The notes under the pieces: model-generated | The model's database searches: none | What the model saw: the letters and a program-made list of their open reading frames with translations, nothing else | Told to the model about the DNA's origin: nothing | In this document: one piece after another, positions 1 through 64,000 of the stretch | How positions within the stretch are numbered: the stretch's first letter is position 1 | Layout: each line of letters starts with the position of its first letter | Translations under genes and position numbers: made by a program | Sequence record: NC_027399.1 | Reading direction: 5' to 3' (one strand) | Length of the DNA: 64,000 bases

Positions 1-13
1 AAGAGACTGAAAA

Positions 14-517
14 ATGGCTAAATTTGATCGACTACCAAAAAAGTATACTTTTATATTACATTTACTAAGAAGAAGTTCAGTACTAAAATCGTTAGTACCT
101 GATGATAAATCAAGAAAAGAACTTATTGAATGCATGTATGATATGTCAAGACATACATTATATAAATTATTAAAGGATTATAGTACTGATCCGTTTAATT
201 CACGCTTTGAACTAAATTCTTCACCGAATTATGTATCATTAGCGTCCATTGAAAAGTTTGAACTAAGAGACAAAACTAACAATATTCTTTTATGTATCAG
301 CAACTATAATGGTAGTACTGAAAAATACAACCCAAAGTATATCAAATGTAATGCATATATCAATGGAAAGTACACAAGTGATGTTTTAACTGAAAATGAA
401 AAATTGTACTTTTTACGCTTACATGAAGATGTACGAGTAATGATCAAAAACTTTGATGAATTGGAAAAATATCAGAAAATCAACGAAGTCAAAGATGAAT
501 TAAAAAGGTTATATTAA
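14..517 (+). CDS. hypothetical protein
   Basis: 167-aa ORF, GAGA-like RBS, overlaps next gene by 1 nt. Confidence 0.7.
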   Translation: MAKFDRLPKKYTFILHLLRRSSVLKSLVPDDKSRKELIECMYDMSRHTLYKLLKDYSTDPFNSRFELNSSPNYVSLASIEKFELRDKTNNILLCISNYNGSTEKYNPKYIKCNAYINGKYTSDVLTENEKLYFLRLHEDVRVMIKNFDELEKYQKINEVKDELKRLY

Positions 518-1005
518 TGGCTATTGCACCCAAGAAACCAAAACAAAACGATAACTCAGTAAAATGCATGTTAGGTGCATTGTTATTATCCAAAAGTTTA
601 ATACTAATGGAGTACAATAACAAAAGAGATATTTTAAATGCGAAGTACTACAATTCAAAAGTCTCACAAGAGGTATATCATTTCTGTAAGTACTGTGTGA
701 ACAATCCATCAGATATAAGTTATTTTAATGAAAGTGGTAATTTAAGATACCAAAATCCTGTTTTTGAATTTTATATCGAACATTATGATATGGGATTCAA
801 ATATTCATCACAATCTGATGTTGTATACTTTAAAGTTCAAAATAATTGGATGGAATTCAGTACTAACAAATATGACAAAATGTTATTGAGTTCAGTATTT
901 TTCTGTTTATCAGAAAGAGAAAGAAATGAAAAAATTCTTTCCAATATACAAAATACAATAGATAGTAAATTGCGTTATCTTGCTATGTATAAGGAGACAA
1001 AATGA
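517..1005 (+). CDS. hypothetical protein
   Basis: 162-aa ORF in tightly coupled operon. Confidence 0.7.
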   Translation: MAIAPKKPKQNDNSVKCMLGALLLSKSLILMEYNNKRDILNAKYYNSKVSQEVYHFCKYCVNNPSDISYFNESGNLRYQNPVFEFYIEHYDMGFKYSSQSDVVYFKVQNNWMEFSTNKYDKMLLSSVFFCLSERERNEKILSNIQNTIDSKLRYLAMYKETK

Positions 1006-1400
1006 CAATTGATGATATTTACAGTACAATAAGGAATTTGGATAAGTACAAAAAAGTTTTTGATTCAATTAACCGTAACATTTTTTATGGTATTGGTACT
1101 TATGATATTATACAACTGGAATACGATCAGGAAGGAAAAAGTGGTATAAATTTCGTGTGTCCACGTGACAGTGAAAACAATTTCATGTATGTTGAAGTGA
1201 ACGAAGATGGCATCAAATTTACAAAAATCTTCAAAGGTGGAATTGATTACGAAGAACTGGATTTGAATGAAGAAGATAGTTTCTTTCAACAAGATACTGT
1301 TATAAATCTTGGTTTTTCATTACAAGAGTACAGAGAAATGCATAAAGATTTTATGCGTTATTACAATGGTTTCCTCAAAGAATTAACGGTACATTTATGA
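1002..1400 (+). CDS. hypothetical protein
   Basis: AGGAG RBS, ATGA overlap. Confidence 0.75.
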   Translation: MTIDDIYSTIRNLDKYKKVFDSINRNIFYGIGTYDIIQLEYDQEGKSGINFVCPRDSENNFMYVEVNEDGIKFTKIFKGGIDYEELDLNEEDSFFQQDTVINLGFSLQEYREMHKDFMRYYNGFLKELTVHL

Positions 1401-1861
1401 ATCTCAATACAAGTGAAATGTTCTTTAACGATGTAAAATCAAAATTTCTAAAAAATGATGGTAGTGGTTTTGATGAAAAAATCAAAGAAGTAGTATTGCG
1501 TTGGAAAAATAGCCCAGTACTGAATAATATATGCCCTCGCTGGTCATGTCAAAGTCATGAATATGATGATTTTAATACTTATTATTACATCATCTTCTGT
1601 ACCCAAAACGATGGTGCGGAATTTCTGTACAATAAAGTATTGAAAAAGCTAATCGAACTCAGTGCAAAGTACGGTGTGATGGATAATTGTTGGGAATACA
1701 AGGTAATCCAGTTAATGAACACAATTGATAACAATCACACACCATTTGAACCACACGTAGAAATTGCATGTAGAGTATTTGGTGATTATAATAAAATTTG
1801 TATTTTAGAAAAAGTATGGTTAGAATTACTAGAAGGTATTGAAAAAGAATATGGGCAATAA
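1397..1861 (+). CDS. hypothetical protein
   Basis: 154-aa ORF, ATGA overlap. Confidence 0.7.
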   Translation: MNLNTSEMFFNDVKSKFLKNDGSGFDEKIKEVVLRWKNSPVLNNICPRWSCQSHEYDDFNTYYYIIFCTQNDGAEFLYNKVLKKLIELSAKYGVMDNCWEYKVIQLMNTIDNNHTPFEPHVEIACRVFGDYNKICILEKVWLELLEGIEKEYGQ

Positions 1862-3095: not shown

Positions 3096-3112
3096 CACAA
3101 AGAGGTAATTAT

Positions 3113-3577
3113 ATGAGCAACTATTCAGAGTATAAACAAAAAGAAATTGAATTGAAAGAAATGGTGAAAACCGTTGGTAAAGAACTCATTCAAGAAATGT
3201 ACGAACAGTTCTTTGAAAAGTACCCAGAAGTTAAATTTGTTAGTACCGTTGGTTATATCCCAGGGTTTAACGATGGTGATGCTTGTGAATTCACATCTGA
3301 TACCGAATTTAGTGGAGATTATGTTGAAAATCTTAGCGAAGAAAGTTTAGAAGATATGGTCATTGCATTTGGTGGTGAACCAGGTGAAGATGATTTATTT
3401 GATCTTGATACTGCGGAAAATCCAAACTGGAATTATCAACAATACAACGCCGCCGGGCAAGATGTGGACGTCGACCTGCTGGAAAAAGTATATGGTTATG
3501 ATTGGATTGTTGTTGCTTATAAAGGTATTGATGGAACAGTTTCAATTGTTCAAGAGGATTATGATTGTGGATATTAA
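3113..3577 (+). CDS. hypothetical protein, paralog A (PxFNDGxxC...EDYDCGY)
   Basis: GAGG RBS; motifs shared with the next gene. Confidence 0.8.
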   Translation: MSNYSEYKQKEIELKEMVKTVGKELIQEMYEQFFEKYPEVKFVSTVGYIPGFNDGDACEFTSDTEFSGDYVENLSEESLEDMVIAFGGEPGEDDLFDLDTAENPNWNYQQYNAAGQDVDVDLLEKVYGYDWIVVAYKGIDGTVSIVQEDYDCGY

Positions 3578-4031
3578 TGCTATCGTTGCAAACATGAATG
3601 CAGAAATTGAAGAAGTACGTCAAAAATATGTAACTATATTTAATGATGATTTCAATATTGTATTACAAGCTATTAAAGACAAATATCCTGCACTCGAAGT
3701 TGTTTATATTCGTGCATGGACACCTCATTGGAATGACGGCGAAGAATGTACACACAAAATGTCTGTATATGTAGATAACAATGGTAAGTATACTGATATC
3801 GAAGAGTTTTTTGAATGTACTGAACGTAATTTTGATTGGGATGAAGCACCTGATTGTATTAAGAATGTCAACAAAGGCATAAGTACTAAAATGTCGAACG
3901 AGATTGTTGGTCTATTCGAAGCTTATCAGGATTCATTTGAAAGTATTCTAGGCACGAACTGGAAAATGACAATTGACTTTACACAAGAACGACCCATTAT
4001 GGTTAAAGAAGATTATGAGTGTGGATATTAA
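3567..4031 (+). CDS. hypothetical protein, paralog B (PxWNDGxxC...EDYECGY)
   Basis: GTG at 3567 with AAGAGGA RBS at 3552-3558; ORF-track start 3363 overlaps paralog A and is unlikely. Confidence 0.75.
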   Translation: MDINAIVANMNAEIEEVRQKYVTIFNDDFNIVLQAIKDKYPALEVVYIRAWTPHWNDGEECTHKMSVYVDNNGKYTDIEEFFECTERNFDWDEAPDCIKNVNKGISTKMSNEIVGLFEAYQDSFESILGTNWKMTIDFTQERPIMVKEDYECGY

Positions 4032-4982: not shown

Positions 4983-4992
4983 AAATAGACCC

Positions 4993-4998: not shown

Positions 4999-5020
4999 TT
5001 CATATATCTTTGAAGGAGAT

Positions 5021-6762: not shown

Positions 6763-6770
6763 AAATATTT

Positions 6771-6807
6771 TTGAACAATTTTAGTACTATGTAATATAAT
6801 GTAAATA
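6771..6807 (+). promoter_or_regulatory. sigma70-type promoter with adjacent late TAAATA, upstream of the non-coding region
   Basis: TTGAAC(6771-6776)-N18-TATAAT(6795-6800); TAAATA at 6802-6807. Confidence 0.6.
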
Positions 6808-7295
6808 ATATCAATTCGAGGACTGAATTCTGCTGAATATCTATATGTATATGGATATACAAATAAACTTGAACCTATCGAAAACGTAGAGAGGCATTTG
6901 AGTGGTTCAGCNNNATAAAATCCTAAGTGTGAGCTTACAAAGCACAGCCATAATTCCAAAGAGTGCACAGGAGTCATCGCAACACGGCAAGTAAAAGAGA
7001 GCTATAGACATATGCTTTCCATCACTATAATCCTCTGGTGATGATAGATTGAACCTACGGAAAGTATTTTTCATAATTGTTAAGGGAGAATACACCAAAA
7101 TTTTTACAGGAGAGTTGCGTCTAAATTTTGTTGTATTCAAGTACTGAGATTGGTCAAATAGTCTCAGTATTAAGTGTGTGGTATGATACCTACTAAACCA
7201 CATGACCTCTGCATAAGACTGAGATAGGGAGAAACCGGGCAGACCGCTTCCGTTCTTTATAAAAAAAGAAATTCTCAATTTGACAGTTTCGAAGA
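6807..7295 (+). ncRNA. candidate large structured non-coding RNA (~480 nt)
   Basis: No credible CDS, raised GC, many nested stems with G-U pairs, and a long-range closing helix 6815-6829 with 7277-7293. Confidence 0.55.
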
Positions 7296-19603: not shown

Positions 19604-19610
19604 TTAAAAA

Positions 19611-19657
19611 AATAAAAAAGTACTAATATGGGTTTCTGTATTAGTACTTTTATTTTA
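19611..19657 (+). terminator. AT-rich hairpin terminator with AGTACT in both arms
   Basis: AAAAGTACTAATA...TATTAGTACTTTT. Confidence 0.55.
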
Positions 19658-19669
19658 TGGTACTAACAA

Positions 19670-21673
19670 ATGACAAATGCAGAATTAAAAGAATTATTAA
19701 ATTGTAAGAACATAAATTCATGGCCTTACTTGTATAAACATGATATTGAAATACGTGATATTCTTTCAATATATAATATAATCCCAAAAACCAATAAAGA
19801 TATTTTTAAATTATTTTACCTATTCATGAATTCATATTCTGAAGAACCAAAAGCTTATTGTGGAAAACCAGCAGTGTATGTTAATTATAAGAATGGGTTT
19901 TATAAAGTATGTTCTGATTTTAATGCAAAAGATAAAAATTCTTGTAAAATTTGTACTGAAATGCGTTACAAATCAAGGACTGAAAATACAAAGAAAAGTA
20001 ATTTGGAAAAATATGGAGTTGAAAATATTTCACAGGTTCAATCCATAAAAGATAAAAAAGAAAAAACATGTATTGAAAAATTTGGTGCAAGTACTAATTT
20101 AAAGACTAAAGAAACCAAAGACAAAATAAAAAATACCAACAGAAAGAAATTCGGTACTGATCATCCTTTGCAAAATACTGATATTTTATTAAAACAGCAA
20201 AATACAAATATAAAACGTTATGGGGTAAAATATCAAGGACAACGTGAAGAAGTAAAGAATAAGATTAAAGAAACAAATTTGAAAATTCGTGGAGTTCCTT
20301 ATGTATTACAGGATGAAAACATTAGGTCAAAGATCAAAGATACTAATATGAAAAAATATGGTGCTTCTTGTATTTTTTCAACACAATATTATAAAGAAAT
20401 AATAATTAATACTAATATTAAAAAATACAATGCATTATATCCAATGCAGAATTCTGATATTCTTAATAAAAGATGTATGACAAATAATAAATTATATGGT
20501 GGTAATTCACCAAGTTGTGATTCTTCAGTACTGAATAAAATGAAGAACACTACACTAGAAAGATATGGTGTTGAATATTATTCCCAAAGCGACGAATATA
20601 AAATTTATATTCAAGATTCATTGTATATGGATAGATATGATATAATTTCAACGAATATTGATTATAATTATATTCCTCTTTTTGATGAAGATGATTTGAT
20701 ATTCAGAACCAACATGGATTTATTACCATTTTGGTGTAATTATTGTGATGATTTATTCTATTCTAAACACAAACAAAATAATATCAAATGTAATTGTCAA
20801 ATAAAACATGGAGTATCTATTAAAGAATTAGAGTTAAGAAATTATATAGTATCGTTAATTCCAGATGAAGATATCATTTTCAATGATCGTACTATTCTTA
20901 ATGGGAAGGAACTTGACATTTATATACCTAATTTGAATTTAGCATTTGAATTTAATGGTATGTATTGGCACAGTAATAATATTATAGACAAAAATATGCA
21001 CCAAAACAAAGTACTACAATGTAAAGAACAAGGTATTAATTTAATTCATGTTTTTGAAGATGAGTGGGATTCCAAAAATGAATTAATTAAAAATCGCATT
21101 AAAAGTAAATTAAATAAATCTCCAAAAATTTATGCAAGAAAATGCACAGTTGGTAATGTCGATAATACTACATACAAAGATTTTTGTAATTTATTTCATA
21201 TTCAGGGTTACACTGAAGCAAAAATCAAAATTGGATTGTATTATGATTATGAACTGGTTGCTGTAATGTCATTTGGAGCACCGAGAAACAAAAGTGATAA
21301 AATTAAATATGAATATGAATTAATTCGTTACTGTTCAGATGGTTCAGTTATTGGTGGTGCTTCAAAAATACTCAAATATTTTGAAAAGAAATATAAACCA
21401 AAATCACTAATGTCATATGCAGATATGAACTGGAGTAATGGAAACTTATATTCAGTACTGGGATTCACTGAAGAGTCATATACCAAACCTGGGTATTTTT
21501 ATTATAACAAAGAAACCAACGAACGAATTTCCAGACAACGTTGTCAAAAACATAAACTGGTTAAATTGGGATATGATAGTAATTTAACTGAAACTACAAT
21601 CTGTTGTGATATTATTGGATATCTAAAAATTTACGATAGTGGTAATTTAAAATACGTTAAAAAATATCAATAA
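19670..21673 (+). mobile_element. free-standing homing endonuclease-like gene (KYG repeats, PD-(D/E)xK domain, C-terminal GNAT-like domain)
   Basis: Repeated (K/R)YG modules; ELDIYIP..LAFEFNGMYWH; C-terminal HIQG..VMSFG..YELIRYC..SYAD. Confidence 0.7.
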
Positions 21674-50022: not shown

Positions 50023-53000
50023 TTATATAACATTTAACAAGTTATTGAGTACCAAACCGTCAATTTTCAATGAATTAGCATACACACTTACATCAATTGG
50101 TTTGTAATAATTTTTATAAACACTAAAATTAAGTTCAACACCAAGATTGATACCAGTGAATGTATATGTTTCACCTTTAGCAAAATAGTGTTCAGCACTA
50201 TACATATCTGAACGAAGGATATTGTTATTATTTCGCACATGAACTTTTTCATATCCAAGTACGATAATATCATCATAACTAGTACTACCAGTAATGATAT
50301 TATCCTTAACACTATATGTACCAACTGAAACTGGCTCCACCACATAAGTGGTATTTTCATTCTCAACTTTAGTAACACTGGTTACTGTACAAGTTGTATC
50401 ACCGATATACACTTTATCTGTTAAATCATATGAGTAAGTCCATCTTACACCATCGAACACAGGTTTAATATCATCGACGTCATATTCATATACAGTAAAC
50501 TCTAAACTTTCTGGAGTTCCAATACGAACCAGTTCATCTAATGTACCAACACCGGTATTTGGCATGAAATATCCACTATCAACCACACCATCAGAAGTTT
50601 CAACTAACTCATTAGAGATTAGCCAAACATCCAAATCTAATGGATCTATTTCATCCGTGTAATCACCATTATTCAAAGAAATATCATAGAATACATCATA
50701 GTCCATAACATCAACTCTGTAATTTCTTATACTTTCATACAACAAATCACCATTGTTATTGAACTCATGGTCTGCAAAACTTCTAATACGAATAACATTT
50801 ATACTTGTTTTTGTATAAGGTTCACCAGTATTATTAGTGGTTAAATTATTAAACTCAAGTTTATTTCCATTTAAATCAACCAAAGAATAAACTCCGTTGT
50901 TAAGCTCAACTTCAAACATAATAGGTCGATCATTCTCTTTGATTTTATCAGTACTGAGAATAAGTTCATGAGTAAAGTTCTGGTATCTGTAATAATCATC
51001 ACCATCTGGGGTAAACACCATAACTTTATCACCACTATTGAGATTACTATTTTTCATCAAGAATTCAGTACTGCTTATAATACTATCAATAGTACTGATA
51101 TAATTATAAGAGTCTTTCTTAATTACTGTGCGGTTTACATAGTTTTGTACCAGACTATATGGAGGAATGCTCACAATAGCTTCTGTACGCTTGTATGGAT
51201 TGAGAACAACAAAACCCTCTATCTGGAATCGACTAAAGTCTTTAATCTGCTGTAGAGATGTAGAATCGTTACTATAACCATCTACTGTAAAACGCATTTG
51301 TGAAATAGCATTAGCACTTGGGTTCAACTCGGAAATATCAATGAAAACTGATTCAGTCAAATCACCTTCGTAGCTCAGTGCGACAGTTTTATATTGAGAT
51401 TCCAAACCTAAATTATCATAAGCATTCATATCATTATAATACTTCTGCCCCTTGATTCCCTCAAGTACAACCATGTAGTCACTGTACATTGGATTATTAT
51501 CATCCATTTCCAGATCATCCATATCAATCTCAACTGCTGTAACTACTGAACCATCAGTAATGAAAAGATCTTCCATATATTCATCAATGCTACGATCATC
51601 AGGAATACTAACATAACTACCGTTAATATTGAATCTAATATATTTTCTCGGGATCATTACAAATGCCTGAATATCCATTGATTTACGATTACTATTCAGA
51701 ATATCCTCTGCATATGCATAAGGATCATCACTGTCTTTATCAAACGTGTTACGAATAGCAGTTAGTACATGGATAGCATCTTTGTAATAACGACCCTGAG
51801 AATCAATATCATATTTGAAACAATAGATACCGTATTCAATTTCCATTACGCTTCTGATGGTTTCTTCATCAGCATCTGGTGTTTCTTCCAAAATAAGTTC
51901 TCTATAATGGGCGAATAAATCCTCACTAATTTCAAAATATCCCATGTTGAAGTCAGAACTTGAACTAAAACCAAAAGGTAATCTCGTATTCGGATTATCA
52001 TTGTAAATTTCACCACTCAGACCACAACCAATGGTATCATGGATTACATCTGAACTCATTGAACTATAAAGTTTTAATCTATTACTCAATGTATTATATT
52101 GTGAATACATTCTAACATCTTGTGTTAAGTTAGAAGTACTATACAATTCAGAAGTGATTCTGTCTAAATCAGAAGTGAAACTTTCAGTTCTTTCAGCATC
52201 ATCAACGTTCAATTTATACCATGCATTGATAGCATCAACTAAATCCAGACTTGTATCAAAATCAGAATATAGTTCAAACATATCAACAGAAATCTGAGTA
52301 TAAATTTCATCTACCTCAACAACTGGTAGTGTATACTTGAAACGCTGGATTTCATAGTACTGTACATTATCATCAGAATTACTTACATACTTAGCATTGT
52401 TCTCTTCCAGACTTGTAACATCATATAAATCACTATCAGGCTGGCATTGAACATTATCAAATTGCATTGAGATATCAATTTCCTGGAATTTTCTATCTGG
52501 GTAAACGAAGTCGTTTGGTATTGAACCAACTACCACCCATTGTCCAGTACTTTCATTATATTCAGCATATTCATGATCCCAAATATCAGATTGTGTTTTA
52601 ACCCAAATTGTACCGTTATATTCATAACCATTTGGATCTAAATCATTACAAACACCATAAACATAATCAGTGTCGGATGTTTTCTGTTCAATTTGAGAAC
52701 GAATTTTAGTCCTGTACGGTTTAACTTCATTGAAATATTCAATAATCTGATTAATCAATTCGTCATTAGTGTAATTTTGTTTAAGTGATTGTTCTAACCC
52801 AACAATATAAATGTATGAAGTTTTGAATACCCAATCAACCACACCCTGTTCAACGTGTACGTATTTAACCATGTCAAATACAATATTACTTTGAGCTAAA
52901 TCGAATGTATTTTTGATTAAATCTAATGCACTTCTTACATTAATTTCCTTGTTGCTTAAAGAACCATCACTGTTATAAACTTCATACCCATCATATAAAG

Positions 53001-56000
53001 ATGAATTAAGAGCGATTGTGCTGTTTTGACGCCCAATAGCATTCCAGAATACAGTATTACGTGATGATGTTTTCACATACATTGTCCATCCATCTGAATC
53101 AGTGATTCGAATAACATCACCAACTTGATAGTTTTTGGTATTAGCTATATCCAGGCTGGCTTCCTGAGTATAATCAGTATTTTCATCATACCCATCACTA
53201 TACCAGTCAGCATATTCCCAGTACTGGGTCATGTCAAGAGAAGTACCAAGTGATTCAACATAATCACTCTGTTTAATCATACTATGTTGTCCTTCACCTA
53301 GACCTTCCAGTGTGATTGTTGATGGATTAGCATCAATACTCTTTGTAGTCATGAATCTTATATAACCATTACTATCGTAGTGGACGAAATATACTGAAGT
53401 TGTATCTAGCGGGGATGGTAATACACCAGTACTACTCAAAATTACTGCATCGTTTTCATCGAATTTATCAAAATCAGTTGAGACAACAAATTCGTTATTG
53501 TATGCCAGAACCCTGAATGTAACTGAATTTTCATTCACCTCAGTAGTTTTAACATTGAAAACTTCACTCATTAATACCGTATCAGTTATGATATTTTGTG
53601 TTTTGTAATAATTATTTGCACTATCTACAAACGTTCTGCGAGCTTCAATCAAATCCATAAACCAGGTTTTAGATGAACCCAACCCTAATTCTACATCAGG
53701 ATAAACAATTTCATTTACTACACCACTCTTCGTGGTTTCGTGTCCTTTCAGAGAATTCCACAGAGAATTCCATATATCTGAATTGAAATTATAGCTATCT
53801 CCTTCTTTACATAGCTGATATTGTTCATGTTTAATAATATCAACACTATCTTCATGATAAGAAACTGTCAAAATGCTGGTATCATCAGTAATTTCATATT
53901 GCATATTACTAAGAATGAATGAATTCTCGTTAATTGGTGCAAACCAAGGAACGTCCAGTAAATGTGGATCTTTAATAATACGTGCAATATCAGTACATGA
54001 TTTACTTCTGGTGTTAATTGGTGGTACATAAATTGTATCTCTTACCCAGAAATAATAATACGTAACATATGAATCAGTTGTTTCATCATACTCAATGAAT
54101 GAAGTATAATTATCCATGATTGCAGTACCAGAAGGTATATACATAGTGTTATTTTTATTATTTTTAGTTTGTTCCTGACAGTATTTGTCCCAATTATATG
54201 GCTGTACTGGAGATTTAACCCACTCAAGAACATTAATATCACTATGTGGTAGCAATCTACCCCAGTTATAACGACGATATTCATTTGTAGCATCTTCATC
54301 AATGTCACCATTCTCATCCAGTACTGGGCGAGTGTAATCCAAATAAAATGCAGTACTGGTGTCCCACCATACTTGACCAACTTTCTCAGAACCCCATGCT
54401 TGAAGAGTTTCTCCATTGCTATTGTACTGAGCAGGGTCTACTGGAGAGATATAAGATACATCTTTCATTGCAGTCCCAGGTAAAACACCATTAATTGGGT
54501 CAAATATATTAAGATATAATTCAGTAATGTTTGTTTTTGAATTATAAGTAGATGGTCTATCAAATAAAGTACTATCTGGAACATCAAAACTGTATTTTTT
54601 ATCAATATATGCCTGACGTTCGGTTGTATCACTGAATCTGGATGTATATTTGTACAGTTTTGGTCTTGTATCTGGATCAGTGAAATTAATTGTGATACTT
54701 GTATCAAACGGAACAACAATTTTAGTTTTATCATCCCCTGCCGTGAAATATTGACTTTCTACTGTTAATGCATCTGGCATAAAATATGTATCATCAACAA
54801 AATAATAATAATCACCATCATCTAATGGAGCTTCGGCATCTAATTGAACAGTACAGTACTGTTCAGCATAAGTATCAGTATTTTCAATTGGAGTAATTGA
54901 TAACATAGATACACCAGTATCAACTAAATCAAAAATGTTCCATTCCTGATTCATATCAACGAACATCCACACTGAATCTGGATTTTCACCATTATTTTTA
55001 ATATAATTCATGCGGTCTTCATATGAATCCTGATAAGTCCATGTAGTATAAGATACTTCATTTAAATTAACTGGGCCAATATCAGGTAAATGGATATTAT
55101 CACTCTTTCNGCGGAATTTACCTTTAGGACGAGTAATCCATCTGGAATCTTCACCTTGTGAACCATAATAAACTATTTCAGTACTACTTGTACTTGTATT
55201 AACATCTTTATTAAACGTAACCAGTTGTGGTTCTTGTTTAAAATCACTGTTAATTAATTGAAATTGTAAATTTTTCTTGGCATTAACGTTTCCATAAGTA
55301 CCAACTTTAAAAGCCCACTCTTGTAGTGCTTTATATTCATCAGTATTATATGATTTAGATACACGAAGAACGCGTTCCATTACCAAATTAGAGCCTTTAT
55401 CTCTAATAAAACCACGATAAAAATCAACACGGTTGGGATTATTAGTGATCATTTGCTGTAAGTAATCACGAGTTTGATATCCAATAACATGAGTACTTAG
55501 ATCATACAGTTGAACATCAGAAACAGGATCATTTGAATCATAATAATGTTGGAAATTAGTAACTAATGTTTCAAATGATGGTAATGTACCAGCTTCAAGA
55601 ATTATAAATCCGGGTGCTTGTAGGCGACCAACCCAGTTATCAGTGATATAACCGTACATTTTCACCAATTCCTGAATAGAACCGAATGTAGGTTGATAAA
55701 TGCTATCACCAAAAATAGTTTTATCATCAAATACCACTGCATGTTCCCATGAACATACACCTAAACGAACCAACGCCATGCGTTTATCGGCATCTTCATT
55801 AACTCTAACAGTGAAAACATTACCAATTCTTGATGTTTCAACTTCATATGGGTAGATACCACTGTTATCATCGTCCAACAGACTCCAGACACCACCATTT
55901 GTTTCACTAATACTTTGTACTGAGCCAAAATAAGTTCCGAATTTGGCATTTTTAGAGCTTGGTGTACATGAAATGTAATCACCAATGGTTAAATCTGTGG

Positions 56001-59000
56001 TACTCCATTGTAAAAAGTACTTAGCAATAGTAGACCAGTCCTGTTGTACCCCAGTGTCATCAACATCTTCAAAAATCCATCCATGTTCAACAAGATATTG
56101 ACCATATCCACACAGGAATGTATAAACATCCTGGAATGTGTTAAGAATAGATCCATATTCAAGCGTATCATCTTCTTTCCATTCCATATAATGAACAACA
56201 GTGCGATTTCCTTCAGTTACGGTTACTTTTTTACCATTTTTAACTGGTAATTTATAAGTAAACGTAGCATTAACCAAATCATAACCTTTAATAATATAAT
56301 TACTACCATTGAAAGTGATTTTAACTGCACTAAGAACTTCATTTTTGATATTATTAGAGCGTACCAGTCCGATTGTTTGGTTTTCTTGTGAAATTAAACC
56401 AAACGATTCAGATGTAAATGTTAATTCATTGCTCTTTGTAAATCCACCAAGCTTGTGTGCAATACTGATGTATGAAGTTCTAACTAAATCACCATATTTT
56501 GAAGTAATATTCTTACTTTGATAGGTTAAGTAGTTACTAACAGCCATTTGATAACCAAGAACACGAGTATTATTTTCACCATGAACCACCGTATCTGAAT
56601 TAAAATTCAGTCGAGTTCTGGTTTCTTTGTACTGCAATTGTAAACCACCATTTTTTACAGTTTTTAGTGTATCATTTAGTGTATCCCAGAAATAATTACA
56701 GAATTGTGCTGGTTTTGCACGATATATCTGCATCATTACATCATAACTAAACATTGCGTTATTCATATAGGTGAATTCGTTGTCACCCATATCACCATAA
56801 GACCATGGTGCACTGCGTTCTTTGATCGTACCTTTTACTAAACCAAGAACGTCAGGTTGAATATAATCAACGGTACAAATTTCTTTACCATTAGTTGAAT
56901 ATTCACCTGTTTTAGTAATTACAAATGGTTGAGTACCAAAACGCTTGTACTTATCATGCTGTCCCTTACGATCTCCATATAAAATGGTACCAGTACTGGC
57001 ATCACCTTTAACACCATTAACATCCCAAAGACCACTTGGTACTAATTCACCACTTTCATTAACAACCAATGCTTCATATACATATAAAATGTCATCTTCA
57101 TTTGTGCCTACCTGAACTTCAGTTGGTTCATATTCCTGATTCCACCAGGTTGGACGAACACCAAAGCCAAACATTTCCCATGGATGAGTTGCAGGGCGAT
57201 AAGTCCCGAACTGATCAGTATATATGGCACGCCAAGAACCACGTGCAGGAAAATCGGTAATTACACCATTAACTGTATAATAGGTACCACTATAATTCCA
57301 CGTCATCCAGTTTTGTTGGTCATAATTATGAGTAGTACTGTCAATTCCGTTGGTTGCAATGAAGTTAATATACCCACGTAGTAATAATTCATCACGTTCT
57401 TCTGCACTATACTCAGTATCCCTGTAATATGGTGTTGGAAACAGATCTGAACTATCAAGTTCAGGTTGATAATCTTCATCTTTGAAAGTATTATCAATAC
57501 TGTTATAAATTCTATTCTCAAGTTCATAGATAACATCATCCATTTTATCTACACCGTTAATAACACGATAAGATTTGGTAATTTCACCAGTATGACGAAT
57601 ATTATACGGTACTTGTTTGGATGCAGCAGTCAGGTATACAGTTTTTTCTGGCTTATGTACTTTAAGAACACCCATAAATTGTGGTGTAGGTGGAATAAAA
57701 GTACGAATTGTAGTTGTAGTACTCCCTACGCCATCGTAATAGAACGCAAAAGTAGAATCTTTACCAACATTAATGTTACTCAAAATAGTATCACAAATAT
57801 CACTACTTGAAGTGCTTAAAAATTTACTTGGGTCTTCTTTATACATATTAAGCATGTAGTTTTCAAATCTGTTATTAAAACGAAGATATTCACCTTGTAA
57901 AAACATTAATGCTTCAAAAAGATCAATATCACTATTAGCAGTATGTGCCATTAGTGGAAGTAGTGATCCTTCGTTTTGAATAATTTTAGTACCAACAGCA
58001 TTATCAACTAACCCTTGTTCAAGACGTTCTTCATAATCATTGATATTATCCACGGCACCAGATGTGATATTTTTTTGTACAATTTCCTGAAAATGTAAAG
58101 TATAATTACTTTGATCAATATAAGAAATATTATCACTATATGGGTTATTTTGTAAATTTACTGGAATTTCATAACTACCAAGATCGGTATCTGGTACTTC
58201 AGTACTACTATAAGTTCTGATTTGAATCACACTTTCAGAGTCCAAATCAACAGAGTCACCAATGGTGATGCTTTGTACTTTACCATTAGACACATTTCTT
58301 GTATAATCTTCAACTACAACACCATTGACCTGAATTTCAATGATATCTGAACTTCCATCAATGACTTTTTGTGCCAGTTCATAACTGCGGTTATACAATT
58401 CACTCTGAATACCTTCAGTGTTTACCATATGCCAGTCATAATAAGTTTCAGATTCTTCTTTGTAGTATTGATAGGTTGCATTGGTTTCAATAACATATGC
58501 ATACATACCATCAATGGCTTGACTGGAAAAGCTTTCCATTTCATATACAGTACTGAACACTCTGTACATATCAGTGCGTTCAACTTGAGGTGTTTGTTTT
58601 ACAAATTGTTTAGAAAATTCAGTACTACGAACCCAGTCAGTTTTTAATACACTATCTTCATCACCAATGATATTGTAATAATAAAATCCAGGGATTTCTT
58701 TAGTTTCACCAGAACTGATGTATTCATAACGAGTACTTTCAATAAAATTTTCGTATATATAATAATTATAATCACCCAATTCTACATTATATCCATAATA
58801 ACTATCAACTTTGTAGTTGTAGTTAATTTTTAGTCCAAACAGAGAAGAACCACTGAAGGTACTTGACGGATATACAGTACTATCTTGTAATTTTACACCA
58901 TTTCGATCATATAACTGGAAAAGAGGGAATGCATTTGTTCCATTCTTTTTCTGAGTTGCAATCCAGTTATGCCCATTCCAGTACATAGTGGTATTTCCAT

Positions 59001-59976
59001 AAACTTTACCACTTTTAATTAATACAACATCACCATCAAGTGGTTCACCACTTACACGTTCTGGTGTTTCTTCATCTGGGTCTAATGCTAAACCATAAAC
59101 GCGAGTACCATCCTGCATTTGGTTGATGTATACTTTATAAATTCTGTTATTTTCACCACTGTTACCAATGCTGGTAAAAAGAATACGCATTCCGTCTAAT
59201 GGGATTTGTCCATCAATACGAATACCCTGATTAATATCTTTTTGTACGATATCTTCTGGTTTTAATGAATCACTTAGTAGATCCACCACACCACGGAACT
59301 GTGTACCAAAATTGATTAGTTCGATATCTTTGTTATATTCAATAATTGGTACTTGTGCACGTACAAAACGATTATCATATGATAATTCATCATTCAGTAC
59401 TGAACCATCTGGTAAAGTATCACCAATGGTATACCAGAAGTTTTGTAATGACCATAAGTTTCCGTTTTTAGCATTACGTTGCATTACAACATAATCAGGA
59501 CTAGCGATACCATATTCATTTTCAGTATCCCAAAGATATGAACTAAAATTAATCATTTTATTTGGATTAATTGGTGGAGTCCATGAATAAATTCTTGAAT
59601 TAAACAGTCGGCTTTGATTATCAGTAATTGCACCATAATGATTCATATAAGAAACCAGATCATCATAGAATTCAATACTACGAATACTTTGATCTACATT
59701 ACGGGAGACATAAGCTGGAGATAACTGATATGCTTGGCGTGGTTGTGTTGATTCATTAACGAAAATCTTACCACTCGCTGCTGGAGAACCCATATCACCA
59801 AGATACCCATCAACGATTTTTTGTTCAGTGGGATTAAAGAATTGTTGAATAACATCATCACATACCTTTTGGATATCTTCCAAGCCTTGCATCCATTCTG
59901 GTAATCTCTTAATGAACAACTTTTGTTGTACTGCTTCAGCCGTTTTTGTTGGTTGAAACTTAAAATCATTAGCCAT
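50023..59976 (-). CDS. giant (~3.3k aa) baseplate/virion structural protein
   Basis: Uninterrupted ORF downstream of gp6-like gene; GGAG RBS before MANDF; YFNEVKPYRTKIR motif; TAAATA at 60015-60020. Confidence 0.8.
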   Translation of the reverse strand: MANDFKFQPTKTAEAVQQKLFIKRLPEWMQGLEDIQKVCDDVIQQFFNPTEQKIVDGYLGDMGSPAASGKIFVNESTQPRQAYQLSPAYVSRNVDQSIRSIEFYDDLVSYMNHYGAITDNQSRLFNSRIYSWTPPINPNKMINFSSYLWDTENEYGIASPDYVVMQRNAKNGNLWSLQNFWYTIGDTLPDGSVLNDELSYDNRFVRAQVPIIEYNKDIELINFGTQFRGVVDLLSDSLKPEDIVQKDINQGIRIDGQIPLDGMRILFTSIGNSGENNRIYKVYINQMQDGTRVYGLALDPDEETPERVSGEPLDGDVVLIKSGKVYGNTTMYWNGHNWIATQKKNGTNAFPLFQLYDRNGVKLQDSTVYPSSTFSGSSLFGLKINYNYKVDSYYGYNVELGDYNYYIYENFIESTRYEYISSGETKEIPGFYYYNIIGDEDSVLKTDWVRSTEFSKQFVKQTPQVERTDMYRVFSTVYEMESFSSQAIDGMYAYVIETNATYQYYKEESETYYDWHMVNTEGIQSELYNRSYELAQKVIDGSSDIIEIQVNGVVVEDYTRNVSNGKVQSITIGDSVDLDSESVIQIRTYSSTEVPDTDLGSYEIPVNLQNNPYSDNISYIDQSNYTLHFQEIVQKNITSGAVDNINDYEERLEQGLVDNAVGTKIIQNEGSLLPLMAHTANSDIDLFEALMFLQGEYLRFNNRFENYMLNMYKEDPSKFLSTSSSDICDTILSNINVGKDSTFAFYYDGVGSTTTTIRTFIPPTPQFMGVLKVHKPEKTVYLTAASKQVPYNIRHTGEITKSYRVINGVDKMDDVIYELENRIYNSIDNTFKDEDYQPELDSSDLFPTPYYRDTEYSAEERDELLLRGYINFIATNGIDSTTHNYDQQNWMTWNYSGTYYTVNGVITDFPARGSWRAIYTDQFGTYRPATHPWEMFGFGVRPTWWNQEYEPTEVQVGTNEDDILYVYEALVVNESGELVPSGLWDVNGVKGDASTGTILYGDRKGQHDKYKRFGTQPFVITKTGEYSTNGKEICTVDYIQPDVLGLVKGTIKERSAPWSYGDMGDNEFTYMNNAMFSYDVMMQIYRAKPAQFCNYFWDTLNDTLKTVKNGGLQLQYKETRTRLNFNSDTVVHGENNTRVLGYQMAVSNYLTYQSKNITSKYGDLVRTSYISIAHKLGGFTKSNELTFTSESFGLISQENQTIGLVRSNNIKNEVLSAVKITFNGSNYIIKGYDLVNATFTYKLPVKNGKKVTVTEGNRTVVHYMEWKEDDTLEYGSILNTFQDVYTFLCGYGQYLVEHGWIFEDVDDTGVQQDWSTIAKYFLQWSTTDLTIGDYISCTPSSKNAKFGTYFGSVQSISETNGGVWSLLDDDNSGIYPYEVETSRIGNVFTVRVNEDADKRMALVRLGVCSWEHAVVFDDKTIFGDSIYQPTFGSIQELVKMYGYITDNWVGRLQAPGFIILEAGTLPSFETLVTNFQHYYDSNDPVSDVQLYDLSTHVIGYQTRDYLQQMITNNPNRVDFYRGFIRDKGSNLVMERVLRVSKSYNTDEYKALQEWAFKVGTYGNVNAKKNLQFQLINSDFKQEPQLVTFNKDVNTSTSSTEIVYYGSQGEDSRWITRPKGKFRXKSDNIHLPDIGPVNLNEVSYTTWTYQDSYEDRMNYIKNNGENPDSVWMFVDMNQEWNIFDLVDTGVSMLSITPIENTDTYAEQYCTVQLDAEAPLDDGDYYYFVDDTYFMPDALTVESQYFTAGDDKTKIVVPFDTSITINFTDPDTRPKLYKYTSRFSDTTERQAYIDKKYSFDVPDSTLFDRPSTYNSKTNITELYLNIFDPINGVLPGTAMKDVSYISPVDPAQYNSNGETLQAWGSEKVGQVWWDTSTAFYLDYTRPVLDENGDIDEDATNEYRRYNWGRLLPHSDINVLEWVKSPVQPYNWDKYCQEQTKNNKNNTMYIPSGTAIMDNYTSFIEYDETTDSYVTYYYFWVRDTIYVPPINTRSKSCTDIARIIKDPHLLDVPWFAPINENSFILSNMQYEITDDTSILTVSYHEDSVDIIKHEQYQLCKEGDSYNFNSDIWNSLWNSLKGHETTKSGVVNEIVYPDVELGLGSSKTWFMDLIEARRTFVDSANNYYKTQNIITDTVLMSEVFNVKTTEVNENSVTFRVLAYNNEFVVSTDFDKFDENDAVILSSTGVLPSPLDTTSVYFVHYDSNGYIRFMTTKSIDANPSTITLEGLGEGQHSMIKQSDYVESLGTSLDMTQYWEYADWYSDGYDENTDYTQEASLDIANTKNYQVGDVIRITDSDGWTMYVKTSSRNTVFWNAIGRQNSTIALNSSLYDGYEVYNSDGSLSNKEINVRSALDLIKNTFDLAQSNIVFDMVKYVHVEQGVVDWVFKTSYIYIVGLEQSLKQNYTNDELINQIIEYFNEVKPYRTKIRSQIEQKTSDTDYVYGVCNDLDPNGYEYNGTIWVKTQSDIWDHEYAEYNESTGQWVVVGSIPNDFVYPDRKFQEIDISMQFDNVQCQPDSDLYDVTSLEENNAKYVSNSDDNVQYYEIQRFKYTLPVVEVDEIYTQISVDMFELYSDFDTSLDLVDAINAWYKLNVDDAERTESFTSDLDRITSELYSTSNLTQDVRMYSQYNTLSNRLKLYSSMSSDVIHDTIGCGLSGEIYNDNPNTRLPFGFSSSSDFNMGYFEISEDLFAHYRELILEETPDADEETIRSVMEIEYGIYCFKYDIDSQGRYYKDAIHVLTAIRNTFDKDSDDPYAYAEDILNSNRKSMDIQAFVMIPRKYIRFNINGSYVSIPDDRSIDEYMEDLFITDGSVVTAVEIDMDDLEMDDNNPMYSDYMVVLEGIKGQKYYNDMNAYDNLGLESQYKTVALSYEGDLTESVFIDISELNPSANAISQMRFTVDGYSNDSTSLQQIKDFSRFQIEGFVVLNPYKRTEAIVSIPPYSLVQNYVNRTVIKKDSYNYISTIDSIISSTEFLMKNSNLNSGDKVMVFTPDGDDYYRYQNFTHELILSTDKIKENDRPIMFEVELNNGVYSLVDLNGNKLEFNNLTTNNTGEPYTKTSINVIRIRSFADHEFNNNGDLLYESIRNYRVDVMDYDVFYDISLNNGDYTDEIDPLDLDVWLISNELVETSDGVVDSGYFMPNTGVGTLDELVRIGTPESLEFTVYEYDVDDIKPVFDGVRWTYSYDLTDKVYIGDTTCTVTSVTKVENENTTYVVEPVSVGTYSVKDNIITGSTSYDDIIVLGYEKVHVRNNNNILRSDMYSAEHYFAKGETYTFTGINLGVELNFSVYKNYYKPIDVSVYANSLKIDGLVLNNLLNVI

Positions 59977-60026
59977 GTTTAGCTCCATAAATTCTTTCTT
60001 ATATCATATGTTTTTATTTATTACAT

Positions 60027-60052: not shown

Positions 60053-60055
60053 AAA

Positions 60056-63000: not shown

Positions 63001-63520
63001 CTGGATTGCCAAACTGGTTGGTACTCACAAAAACATTGTTCATAACCAGAATAAAGTTCTCGTACCAGTTAGGATCAGTAGGGTCATTCCATCTAATCGT
63101 TTTATCTTTAAGTGATTTATTAAAACTATTTCGTACATCCTGGTTTGTTTTTATTTCAGTGACTTTAGCTAATGCACGACCTGGATATGAACGCCTTGGA
63201 GCATAAGAGATCATTTTAGCAAGTTTAAGTACCGAAGCCCTGCGGGTTGCAGTATCCATAAAGTTTTCACGAGTGTTCATGTCCATACGAAATGCAAGGT
63301 TTTGACCAAGCATGGCAATCGTGTCCAGAATGAATAAAAATTCATCATTTGCAATCCAGTCATTGAATGTATCAGGATAGTTAGTACTAAGATAGTCAAC
63401 CATACTTTGACGTATACTATCGAAATCATATGAATTCAATGAAATTTGATAAAAACTTTCATATATTTGCGACCAGTCTTCACCAGCGTATAAATTAGAT
63501 TGTCTTCTTTGCTGAGACAT
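60056..63520 (-). CDS. baseplate wedge protein (T4 gp6-like)
   Basis: DFDSIRQSMVDYL, FNDW, RENFMDTATRRASVLKLAKMISY, QNRFVNGEDY. Confidence 0.88.
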   Translation of the reverse strand: MSQQRRQSNLYAGEDWSQIYESFYQISLNSYDFDSIRQSMVDYLSTNYPDTFNDWIANDEFLFILDTIAMLGQNLAFRMDMNTRENFMDTATRRASVLKLAKMISYAPRRSYPGRALAKVTEIKTNQDVRNSFNKSLKDKTIRWNDPTDPNWYENFILVMNNVFVSTNQFGNPVKKTNVNGLSTHLYKMNTNQMQSPAIPFSANVNGESMKFEVVNPDISSSGVDERHPEPQEQKYIIYQNDGNGFNSINTGFFVYFKQGTLSKQDFDYSVSIENRLQDINVNNINETDVWVQEINQDGLVRTKWTKVPAMESVAYNSVDRKKQTIFAVTTRDNDQISIKFPDSRSGVVPRGTFRTWYRVSNGMTYSIKTTDIQNKSIKYQYRTNAQSNYEQSILEVKFTLQYESSRAQSAETLEQIKARAPQLYYTQNRFVNGEDYDIAPLSQGNLVQKAKAINRIYSGQSRFIDINDPTGKYQNTDVFSDDGSMYKDKVTYKNTVSLPTSKPNASIVVDSIQPLIGENAVIQKYQSYPSNTVTLELRNIWTPEYNSNYTNNTYGKILDSTGKTLYDYQVGTLILFTDGNTTIWSSITNVLENGYYILSTTVPTSMYIQEYIKPYRISFNSVEIQSISAELDKKTDFVLIYDTSISRWVPVEISTDEEEISYQGITVPVMVNIKYTSESWSFESNGIEYIFVGGSKVRFYFVNPNKINDINSGTVQNDKITILSSNTTDTSNLGLSSDIQFQIIDNIEQDNGYIDGSRVVISSTKIDTNGIPLEPNQFSNIVPDWESTDLKKYGAILIFQQNEDFTVEALNLPDDDFTLLDSSWKYTNSDALAETNAYKRKEFTRNVEIRSTLLSDLFNKGSGFVIGFAYNDNYYFIEQNVGNNNDRLNNLITNMTSSDDTSAITPETAFYRAIMNNGSSDVDENQKLSYYGYDDVSTQYDVKVGARSGVYFHWKHYAPDDNRIDPSKTNLIDMYVLTTSYHDEVQLWIKNGASGTIPKPPTSVELKQTFSDVELRSVISDSLIWHSARYLPLFGDSADESYRADFKVVPLPNTTMSDDEIRQNVISLCNEYFSIDNWDFGESFYYTDLCTYIQSNLGRYISTIVIVSQNPDSKFGSLFEIPSQSDQIFISTATVDNVQIVKSLAKTNINIGS

Positions 63521-63738
63521 ATATGTTATTCCTTTAAAATTATGTTGAATGTATTTTTAAAGTGCTGTATAAGTACTGAAATATGATTTTCATCATATCT
63601 AATTCTCAATAGTCATTCTTTATACACGTAATTATGTTTTCTAATGATTCATTATTACTTTGGTATTGTAAATTGATTCATTTAACCATATAAAATACTA
63701 TCCAGTACTATATTCTATGAAGATATTTATAAAATAAT

Positions 63739-63761
63739 AAAGGCTCCATATCGGAGCCTTT
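63739..63761 (-). terminator. intrinsic terminator
   Basis: AAAGGCTCC-atatc-GGAGCCTTT. Confidence 0.75.
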
Positions 63762-63768
63762 AATGTTA

Positions 63769-64000
63769 TTATGAAACAACATAAGATGACATTTTATCAG
63801 TGTTTCTGTTATCAAATACCATACGAAGAGTTTCAACTGAATTTAGAATTACATACTTCAGTTGTAATTCAACTACATAACCGTAATCAATTTTTTCGGC
63901 CGCAATATTCAATAGTTCAACTCTTGGTTCTTCATACACAATTCTCCTACAGTCAGCTTCAATAAGATTGAGTGTGTTGTAGCTATCCAGTGAGAAGATT
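63769..64000 (-). CDS. baseplate gp25-like protein, 3' part (truncated by window edge)
   Basis: Own translation: IFSLDSYNTLNLIEADCRRIVYEEPRVELL...GYVVELQLKY..VETLRMVFDNRN..*. Confidence 0.75.
   Translation of the reverse strand, partial: IFSLDSYNTLNLIEADCRRIVYEEPRVELLNIAAEKIDYGYVVELQLKYVILNSVETLRMVFDNRNTDKMSSYVVS

Follow-up and report, generated by a model that had tools for sequence, protein, structure and literature searches.

The first 64,000 bases of the Klebsiella phage K64-1 genome (AB897757.1 / NC_027399.1; bases 1-64000, hereafter the window, identical throughout to the beginning of the record) carry tail, baseplate and nucleotide-metabolism genes, mostly on the + strand. K64-1 is a jumbo myovirus of 346,602 bp belonging to the genus Alcyoneusvirus, and RaK2, Muenster and RCIP0023 are among its close relatives (identity 95-98%). 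Scattered within and between these genes is the palindrome AGTACT, the most frequent hexamer of the window, which at a G+C content of 33% outranks all words made of A and T only, including AAAAAT. It was found 153 times, corresponding to 2.39 copies per kb or on average one per 418 bp, with exact matches starting at the following positions:

79, 182, 314, 644, 689, 859, 1516, 2130, 2502, 2661, 3008, 3882, 4057, 4107, 4264, 4410, 4447, 4940, 5452, 5493, 5723, 5975, 6388, 6447, 6783, 7140, 7547, 7577, 8062, 8146, 8503, 8585, 8844, 9089, 9487, 9764, 10175, 10290, 10398, 10684, 10870, 11101, 11439, 12270, 12860, 13217, 13246, 13845, 13860, 14140, 14299, 15061, 15747, 16041, 16123, 16576, 17811, 18086, 18249, 18750, 19297, 19619, 19643, 20090, 20527, 21010, 21454, 22474, 24198, 24478, 24659, 24769, 24874, 25638, 26789, 27106, 27194, 27364, 28121, 28502, 29085, 29421, 29729, 30615, 30702, 30795, 31842, 32315, 33569, 33892, 34454, 35436, 35579, 36414, 36493, 37636, 38218, 38442, 39239, 39563, 39836, 40205, 40564, 41117, 41434, 41937, 42166, 42683, 42737, 42875, 43689, 44538, 46616, 46682, 47429, 47878, 48831, 49385, 49424, 50281, 50950, 51067, 51091, 52135, 52356, 52546, 53220, 53428, 54320, 54352, 54568, 54855, 55180, 55492, 56016, 56992, 57334, 57718, 58201, 58549, 58621, 58732, 58876, 59396, 60122, 60704, 61226, 61553, 61718, 62969, 63383, 63572, 63704

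Depending on the null model, this number represents a 7- to 10-fold excess: dinucleotide-preserving shuffles yield 16.7 ± 4.2 copies (the largest count being 25), base composition predicts 21.8 and a first-order Markov model 15.7. A fourth-order Markov model expects 138 copies, but it seems to explain the motif only through its pentamers AGTAC and GTACT, which are already inflated. The excess grows from the core outward, GTAC being 2.5-fold over composition, RGTACY higher and AGTACT highest, and 30 of the window copies are extended to the 8-mer CAGTACTG. A preliminary description of the window had put the excess at about 10-fold and had called the near-variants AGTACA and GGTACT common as well; the excess was confirmed and is stronger than proposed, both variants are enriched (51 against 23 and 49 against 9.7 expected, respectively), and all 19 coordinates listed there are exact matches. 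tRNA genes and repeats were rejected as a source of the motif, the window being free of tRNAs. Across the whole genome, AGTACT is again the top hexamer (940 copies, 2.71/kb, against 79 expected) and CAGTACTG occurs 242 times against 3.0 expected, i.e. a twelve-fold excess for the hexamer and an 80-fold excess for the octamer. Counts in the exchange-prone tail-fibre/depolymerase block are among the lowest of the genome.

The excess is independent of coding. When synonymous codons were shuffled with the protein sequences and the codon usage of each gene held fixed, the 75 window genes, which contain 143 copies, were expected to contain 48.8 ± 5.6, and permutation of codons lowered the expectation to 27.7 ± 4.9; a first run of these nulls, which used the RefSeq-truncated version of a giant open reading frame (ORF) described below, had given 127 against 42.9 and 25.3, respectively. 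For the ORFs of the whole genome, the corresponding values are 789 observed against 247.9 ± 12 (synonymous shuffle) and 126 ± 11 (codon permutation), and CAGTACTG reached 189 against 21 in the codon-aware test. Under both codon nulls, AGTACT and its overlapping extension CAGTAC/GTACTG are the only outstanding hexamers, and comparable non-palindromic words are thus not equally enriched. With these Markov and codon-shuffled controls, both of which the preliminary description had called for, a roughly threefold excess survives synonymous shuffling, and the ratio does not approach 1 after control for codon and dipeptide usage. As stated there, the motif uses all reading frames (AGT-ACT 86, xxA-GTA-CTx 42 and xAG-TAC-Txx 15 in the window). 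Moreover, its density hardly differs between coding and non-coding DNA, neither in the window (2.39/kb against 2.46/kb, the latter from 10 copies in 4.06 kb) nor in the genome outside the early zone introduced below (2.40/kb in ORFs, 2.36/kb between ORFs), where no preference for gene starts or ends was detected either.

The bases next to the motif are not random. Among the 940 genomic copies, C precedes the hexamer at a frequency of 0.46 and G follows it at 0.51, with G at -1 (0.07) and C at +1 (0.04) being depleted, and T at -2 and -3 (0.43, 0.47) is mirrored by A at +2 and +3 (0.44, 0.53). The mirror pattern is the same when only the 773 sites beyond the promoter zone are considered, in DNA with almost all of its genes on a single strand. 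Coding bias cannot produce mirror-image flanks in DNA that is coding on one strand, and the two-fold symmetry points to recognition of double-stranded DNA. The putative recognition unit is a 12-bp palindrome, ttCAGTACTGaa, with AGTACT as its core, and a reader would be two-fold symmetric or treat both strands alike. Single-mismatch variants behave in the same symmetric manner, with similar ratios of observed to expected counts within mirror pairs (genome-wide, GGTACT 4.3 and AGTACC 3.4; TGTACT 2.3 and AGTACA 2.9; AGGACT 0.53 and AGTCCT 0.52); this graded, mirror-matched enrichment has the shape of a putative binding-energy landscape. These observations bear on one alternative, a by-product of events at the codon, dipeptide or RNA level, such as Ser-Thr pairs written as AGT-ACT or a function of AGUACU in mRNA. 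AGT-ACT is the commonest frame (86 of 143), and an excess of this type, apparently bound to the AGT-ACT frame, is present in L033, an unrelated metagenomic locus. We nevertheless regard such an origin as barely conceivable, given the threefold excess that remains with protein and codon usage fixed, the presence of the motif in all frames and in non-coding DNA alike, and the symmetric flanks. The two codon shuffles rule out a codon or dipeptide artefact, and the mirror flanks, together with promoter copies located upstream of transcription starts, rule out an RNA-level signal.

Several elements of the window contain the motif in a defined structural context:

6768 to 6812, + strand: promoter-like site of the sigma-70 type (TTGAAC, 18-bp spacer, TATAAT) with AGTACT at 6783-6788 inside the spacer; promoter function is predicted from the sequence.
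19608 to 19662, + strand: intrinsic-terminator-like hairpin after the head-to-tail connector gene, with 14-bp arms followed by a T-run.
19670 to 21673, + strand: homing-endonuclease gene gp045, with four AGTACT copies (20090, 20527, 21010 and 21454).
50023 to 59988, - strand: giant virion-protein gene, a single ORF of 3321 amino acids with 24 AGTACT copies.

The copies that had been noted previously in the promoter, in the terminator arms and in the homing-endonuclease gene are all present. The two arms of the hairpin, each of which holds one AGTACT (19619-19624 and 19643-19648), are exact reverse complements, and the minimum free energy of -17.2 kcal/mol (z = -6.2) was not equalled by any of 200 shuffled sequences. 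Even gp045, a presumably mobile gene, has AGTACT at the genome-average density. The giant ORF matches ORF070w of RaK2 (50037-60017), and in RefSeq NC_027399.1 the corresponding gene, gp079, stops at 54144, with 54145-59988 being filled by 18 tiny 'hypothetical' ORFs. An N at 55110 probably broke this gene call. An apparent non-coding island at 54-60 kb was therefore dismissed as an annotation artefact, the stretch being part of the 3321-residue ORF.

Far higher densities are reached outside the window, in the early region of the genome (220-250 kb), where counts climb to 52-71 per 10 kb and the density in non-coding DNA rises to as much as 12.3/kb. Twenty pairs of AGTACT lie exactly 20 bp apart, 19 of them forming AAAAAGTACTTGACA-N10-yCAGTACTGtATAAT and 18 being located at 224-244 kb. 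These 19 pairs resemble promoters of the sigma-70 type (AGTACTTGACA-N10-CAGTACTGTATAAT), in which the first copy abuts the -35 element and the second lies in the spacer, adjoining the -10 element; the arrangement of the site in the spacer at 6783 is the same. In the Cronobacter phage GAP32, which belongs to a different genus and shares about 65% tail-sheath identity with K64-1, the early promoters read AAAAAGTACTTGCA-N10-11-gAGTACTtTATAAT and thus retain two copies 20-21 bp apart with different flanks. With a fixed position in many promoters and in relatives, the paired copies have the sequence-level characteristics of putative operator sites in sigma-70-type promoters. Furthermore, 12 AGTACT sites are the centres of perfect palindromes of 16-24 bp, mostly in the early region, several of them just upstream of ribosome-binding sites. 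In the palindromes upstream of early genes (e.g. GGGAATCAGTACTGATTCCC and GAGATTCCAGTACTGGAATCTC; 226161, 228031, 234309 and 239217, L006, 224-240 kb) the AGTACT centre is constant and the stems vary, and in the two cases with clear ribosome-binding sites the palindrome lies about 10 nt upstream of those. As RNA, these sequences would form hairpins with a GUAC loop (-8.5 to -14.2 kcal/mol). In a low-quality stretch of the same region (242804-242997, containing 26 Ns), Ns at 242885 and 242941 (L006:28885 and 28941) fall on the fourth base of otherwise perfect AAAAAGTNCTGG and CCAGTNCTGG, probably by chance.

Comparison with related phages, as had been suggested at the outset, revealed the excess throughout the RaK2-like clade and not in more distant relatives. 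AGTACT ranked first or second among the hexamers in 19 of 19 IMG/VR loci with a tail sheath at least 62% identical to that of K64-1 (first in 17), with a 5- to 8-fold excess, and was likewise enriched in E. coli phage CMSTMSU (93 against 13.6 expected) and in the first 50 kb of GAP32 (253 against 13.8). No enrichment was observed elsewhere: IMG/VR loci with a tail sheath of at most 47% identity reach 0- to 2.3-fold, Stenotrophomonas phage RAS14 has 8 copies against 11.5 expected, a T4-like coliphage has 4 against 8.3, and a 50-kb stretch of E. coli K-12 contains 3 (0.06/kb). The distant metagenomic locus L033 does show a 5-fold excess, with T at -1 in most copies and a normal GCGC content; its sites appeared by eye to be frame-bound (AGT-ACT, Ser-Thr), and we rejected it as an instance of the clade-type signal, taking it to be a different, codon-level effect. 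The examined cultured phages of the RaK2-like clade all infect Enterobacterales (Klebsiella, E. coli and Cronobacter). Since the excess is confined to the clade, it is a trait of one group of Enterobacterales jumbo phages and is not imposed on all phages of those hosts.

The host range raises the question of whether a protein of the Enterobacterales reads the sites, for example the nucleoid-occlusion factor SlmA, which phage DNA could activate or titrate, thereby blocking division. SlmA binds GTGAGTACTCAC, a sequence whose centre is the identical AGTACT, and requires G at position 1, T at position 2 and a purine at position 3 (GTRAGT followed by ACTYAC; PMC3020112). The base most strongly depleted in the phage is G at position 3, the flanks GTR and YAC accompany 12 and 10 of the 940 sites against 27.8 expected, and complete sites occur only twice; the T4-like coliphage, moreover, is not enriched in AGTACT. 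With the centre shared but the required flanks depleted, a hijacking of SlmA was rejected, and we regard a host reader in general as very improbable. TrpR, which reads ACTAGT/CTAG, was considered as well. TTCAGTACTGAA appears in one paper as motif-finder output for TrpR promoters, but CTAG is depleted in K64-1, and this candidate was also discarded.

Along the genome, the motif is spaced slightly more evenly than at random (variance/mean 0.74; 39 control hexamers average 1.14). Gap lengths have a coefficient of variation of 0.94 (P = 0.04), and gaps below 30 bp are deficient (27 against 51 expected). The preliminary description had asked for an examination of periodicity; the sole peak is the 20-bp promoter pair and long gaps follow a Poisson distribution, and strict spacing or periodicity was rejected. 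A regular supply of sites would be expected if AGTACT served an enzyme of DNA transactions that the phage needs within a few hundred bp of any point, such as a nicking or recombination endonuclease, the type II topoisomerase of the phage (cutting GTAC with a 4-bp stagger), a primase, or an exonuclease that halts, as at Chi, on meeting the word in either orientation. The uniform, coding-independent density and the shortage of very close pairs fit this idea, as does a palindrome that works in both orientations, and the phage possesses T4-type recombination and replication proteins, a split topoisomerase II and many HNH, CapR-domain and Hef-like endonucleases; the roughly 45-fold contrast in AGTACT density between phage and host would permit the two DNAs to be treated selectively. 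We consider this explanation rather improbable, however, since long gaps are not depleted, none of these enzymes is linked to AGTACT, the fixed two-site layout of the promoters is left unexplained, and primases and type II topoisomerases normally need far less specificity.

Gains and losses of the motif were counted in an alignment of K64-1, RaK2 (bases 1-264300) and OU509535 (unannotated), which diverge by 1-2% and provided 235,335 well-aligned columns with 4443 singleton substitutions; expectations were modelled by codon position and substitution type. For AGTACT, 26 gains compare with an expectation of 12.2 (P = 4e-4). When the 1107 hexamers for which 8 or more gains were expected are ranked, the top three ratios are those of GTACTG (28 against 9.9), CAGTAC (20 against 8.3) and AGTACT, the median being 0.72. 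The same test confined to the window had been underpowered (7 against 3.3, P = 0.05), hence the extension to 235 kb. Gains occurred at all positions of the motif and through at least nine substitution types, among them 10 transversions at the outer positions (2.1 expected) and 6 changes of C>T at position 3 or its mirror equivalent (1.9 expected), and 19 of the 26 lie at third codon positions. No C>T hotspot was found at the C of the motif in this alignment (8 observed, 10.1 expected). At a larger distance, between K64-1 and CMSTMSU (different genera, 66% nucleotide identity), the aligned columns contain 45 and 43 sites, of which 15 are shared, i.e. 33% compared with 17% for the average hexamer. 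The density of the motif is therefore conserved and its positions turn over, with new sites arising at two to three times the neutral rate: a directional force still creates AGTACT sites.

Whether this force must be selection was considered next to a non-adaptive drive, in which biased repair, gene conversion or recombination favours AGTACT alleles, as has been proposed for uptake sequences and for Vsr. Gains in excess with losses at a neutral rate, equal densities in coding and non-coding DNA and the turnover of positions between genera are all consistent with a drive. Several observations make it improbable in our view: the many types of substitution, acting at all positions and including the outer transversions, do not form a single mutational channel, and no neighbouring word is drained in the way that Vsr drains its substrate. 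The effect of Vsr on word frequencies is modest, and the twelve- and 80-fold excesses are far beyond it. In addition, the clustering of copies at early genes and the retention of the promoter layout by GAP32 suggest that the sites are used, and positional retention over long range is twice that of the average hexamer. Vsr-type repair or decay of 5-methylcytosine was specifically rejected, as AGTATT and AATACT are not drained (observed/expected 1.62 and 1.14) and the C>T hotspot is absent. Of the two interpretations offered in the preliminary description, a HIP1-like, selected signal at the level of DNA agrees with the continuing excess of gains, whereas a repair-driven mutational sink created by a methylase is disfavoured, because the only drained neighbour is AGGACT/AGTCCT, which is not a deamination product, C>T changes are not concentrated at the motif and gains take many routes.

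A search of the genome for methyltransferases and DNA-binding proteins, which had likewise been recommended, identified a Mom-family enzyme, a Dam-family N6-adenine methyltransferase, a C5 methyltransferase and an H-NS-like protein, none of which could be linked to AGTACT. With such enzymes present, AGTACT, or its core GTAC, could instead be a modification target, the density of modified sites being what is selected, with the clade-conserved gp580 as the likeliest enzyme. Marks of this kind could tell parental from new DNA, in the manner of a timer for early promoters or of Dam/SeqA/MutH-like strand discrimination or sequestration, and would provide the closest parallel to HIP1. RaK2 DNA has been reported to resist many restriction enzymes (PMC3622015). 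In K64-1, gp580 belongs to the Dam family (PF05869, 2.8e-27) and is accompanied by the C5 enzyme, and homologues of the two with 60-80% identity were detected in 37 and 39 phage records, respectively, most likely other members of the clade. A pair of sites covering the -35 flank and the spacer would be well placed in promoters that respond to methylation, and a symmetric logo is equally expected from an enzyme that reads each strand. Characterised members of the gp580 family, however, methylate GATC, and the C5 enzyme gp237 (166664-167557; L005:2664-3557) is over its full length closest to the catalytic domains of eukaryotic DNMT3A/3B (E = 2e-22), far above M.HhaI and M.HaeIII. This relationship fits the methylated CpG reported for RaK2 (PMC3622015), and AGTACT contains no CpG. 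The DNA of a related phage, fEgEco12, is cut normally by ten enzymes (PMC13070987). Furthermore, the targets of orphan methyltransferases are not normally enriched, and the C of the motif is not a C>T hotspot. Altogether, modification appears to us an unlikely explanation of the excess, with the Dam-family enzyme as its remaining candidate.

Two of the candidates could be dismissed individually. The Mom gene gp190 (135456-136040; L004:21456-22040) encodes a protein 66-68% identical to Mom of Vibrio phage ICP1. The target context of phage Mu Mom is (C/G)-A-(G/C)-N-(C/T), the last position of which CAGTA fails, and the gene is reduced to a remnant of 34 codons in OU509535, which still has 2.71 AGTACT/kb. 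Among 299 records with Mom matches, Escherichia is outside the ten commonest organism names (fewer than 9 records), and the clade comprises at least 25 Escherichia records; the enzyme thus seems to be rare or absent in the Escherichia members of the clade, and its gene is probably a mobile accessory gene. The H-NS-like gp430, the only annotated DNA-binding protein of the early region, was rejected as the reader because homologues were seen only in Alcyoneusvirus by a word-based search. A relationship to restriction-modification was not apparent either: the site recognised by ScaI (AGTACT), with its RsaI core (GTAC), is enriched and not avoided, and no ScaI-like gene pair is named in the RefSeq annotation of K64-1.

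Apart from the abundance of AGTACT, the vocabulary of these phages is marked by missing words. GCGC is absent from the 346.6 kb of K64-1 (124-216 copies expected) and equally from RaK2, OU509535, GAP32, CMSTMSU and all 19 clade loci, the GCGC-free set comprising K64-1 (L001-L008), RaK2, OU509535, L009, L011, L016-L030, L034, L035, L040 and L042. Its frequency is normal in every locus outside the clade, as it is in the T4-like phage and E. coli (342 copies in 50 kb, about 7/kb). This suggests a GCGC-directed activity intrinsic to the clade, for example a phage nuclease for host DNA. The non-palindromic GACATC/GATGTC is nearly as rare, with a single copy in the K64-1 genome against 142 expected and none in the window; the one copy, at 333155 (L008:19155), lies in the tail-fibre block. 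The word is depleted in GAP32, CMSTMSU and the clade loci from IMG/VR that were checked, being zero in most, and is also absent from Stenotrophomonas phage RAS14 (0 against 23 expected). We know of no enzyme with GACATC specificity. Taken together, the excess of AGTACT and the loss of GCGC and GACATC allow phage and host DNA to be separated almost perfectly by three words in these samples. Other palindromes are scarce in the window (CTTAAG 0 against 14.6; GTTAAC 4 against 21.7; CAGCTG, CTGCAG, GCATGC and TGGCCA all 0) or low in the whole genome relative to composition (CTAG 0.30, AGCT 0.49, GGCC 0.41). This is classical restriction avoidance beside the excess of AGTACT, in keeping with the earlier remark that phages usually deplete restriction-type palindromes; GCGC, CTTAAG and GTTAAC obey this rule, unlike AGTACT.

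Additional biases were noted in the word counts of the genome. The most depleted hexamer is TAAATA/TATTTA (315 against 870 expected). TATAAATA, the late-promoter word of the T4 type, was counted 13 + 16 times where about 89 copies were expected, and both shortages would fit an avoidance of spurious late promoters. Chi of E. coli, the octamer GCTGGTGG, is present in 13 copies on the + strand and 3 on the - strand, with about 1.7 expected on the two strands together, and the tetramers CTGG, TGGT and GGTG contained in it rank among the most over-represented; the excess of the octamer may be driven by codons (GCT-GGT-GG).

The reading that we favour, tentatively and without giving it the greater part of our confidence, is that AGTACT forms the core of ttCAGTACTGaa, a putative selected site for a clade-specific protein that reads duplex DNA and would serve both in the control of early promoters and as a genome-wide tag. 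It starts from features observed directly, namely the excess, its independence of coding, the symmetry, the clade distribution, the continuing gains and the promoter layout, and would add to them protein binding, a phage origin of the reader and an effect of binding. The reader would most likely be encoded by the phage and be dimeric or act alike on both strands, and selection would hold its site at about one per 400 bp throughout the genome, irrespective of coding. Bound to the sites paired at 20-21 bp in the promoters, such a protein would control early transcription, most simply by shutting it off; elsewhere it would mark, coat or organise phage DNA, and the richness in AGTACT relative to host DNA could act as a positive 'self' tag. 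The self-tag part of this reading is strengthened by the loss of GCGC and GACATC, with the use of the missing words by nucleases being a conjecture.

A number of observations weigh against a selected protein-binding site. No AGTACT-binding protein was found among the K64-1 candidates, and gp430, the H-NS-like protein, has no relative in the PDB in addition to its narrow distribution. The roughly 800 further sites inside genes are hard to square with a promoter regulator, and gaps longer than 1500 bp are as frequent as expected (23 against 21.3), which argues against a strict spacing requirement. In the three-genome alignment, losses exceed gains (48 against 26) and, with 69.4 expected, run at a ratio of 0.69, close to the hexamer median of 0.70. 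At such an ordinary rate of loss, purifying selection on individual sites is weak or invisible; the short-term, neutral-looking rate fits weak selection per site. A monomeric enzyme acting strand by strand would also yield a symmetric logo, so that binding and modification are not separated by symmetry. Finally, the statement that the phage DNA is about 45 times richer in AGTACT than that of E. coli K-12 is based on one 50-kb sample with three copies.

A broader proposal, which we hold to be unlikely as a whole, is that RaK2-like phages distinguish self from non-self by vocabulary, through a two-sided barcode in place of base modification or a phage nucleus. On its positive side, ttCAGTACTGaa, at about 2.7/kb against about 0.06/kb in the one E. 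coli sample, would be read by a phage protein that controls early promoters and marks, coats or protects the DNA. On its negative side, GCGC and GACATC would be words that phage nucleases could cut freely in host DNA.

We found no mention of the motif in papers on RaK2, CBB, PA5oct and fEgEco12, nor did it emerge from full-text searches of the word together with 'phage', and a highly iterated palindrome that is wired into the promoters of a virus is apparently unreported. Phages are known for avoiding restriction-type palindromes, and here one of these is the commonest hexamer of a 346-kb virus and is enriched in at least three genera. If the reader exists, it would represent a new kind of genome-wide system for binding or marking phage DNA and would offer a handle on the timing of early transcription and on the separation from host DNA in jumbo phages that lack a nucleus. 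The clade includes phages of E. coli, which are experimentally easier than cyanobacteria, and could become a tractable model for the puzzle of highly iterated palindromes. In metagenomes, the density of AGTACT and the absence of GCGC provide a simple signature of the clade.

Among known genomic words, the SlmA site GTGAGTACTCAC is the most similar in sequence, being a 12-bp palindrome with an identical central AGTACT that is read by a dimeric helix-turn-helix protein (PMC3020112). About 50 such sites exist in E. coli, all of them outside promoters; the 940 copies of the phage include those in promoters, and the flanks required by SlmA are depleted around them. DNA uptake sequences (USS/DUS) of Pasteurellaceae and Neisseriaceae form a comparable carpet of about 1/kb or denser in and between genes, often with inverted pairs in terminators, and share the logic of a self-tag that may be maintained by drive or selection; they are, however, asymmetric 9-12-mers read by a competence receptor, and AGTACT is a palindrome in a lytic phage without an uptake step. 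Chi (GCTGGTGG) likewise belongs to the over-represented words that mark own against incoming DNA and could limit degradation, but it is asymmetric, biased in orientation and read on single-stranded DNA by RecBCD. As both AGTACT and its flanks are palindromic, the resemblance to uptake sequences and Chi is one of function as a self-tag only. The stoperators of cluster A mycobacteriophages also place many copies of one protein-binding site across a phage genome besides the operators of promoters. They are asymmetric 13-mers, with about 25-35 per genome, found in short intergenic gaps and oriented with transcription; the 940 putative protein-binding sites of K64-1 are palindromic and mostly lie inside genes.

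The closest statistical parallel is HIP1 (GCGATCGC) of cyanobacteria, to which the motif had been likened in the preliminary description. In both cases, a palindrome exceeds Markov and codon nulls many-fold across the genome, in coding and non-coding DNA and in all frames, is shared by a clade, spreads by point substitution, has no agreed function and coexists with DNA methyltransferases encoded in the same genomes. The two differ in length (6-12 bp against 8), in residence in a virus instead of a cell, in the incorporation of AGTACT into promoters and in the total loss of another palindrome, GCGC, beside it. The word is not GCGATCGC, and its genome is that of an Enterobacterales phage and not of a cyanobacterium; AGTACT is thus a highly iterated palindrome in the statistical sense, an analogue of HIP1 and not HIP1 itself.

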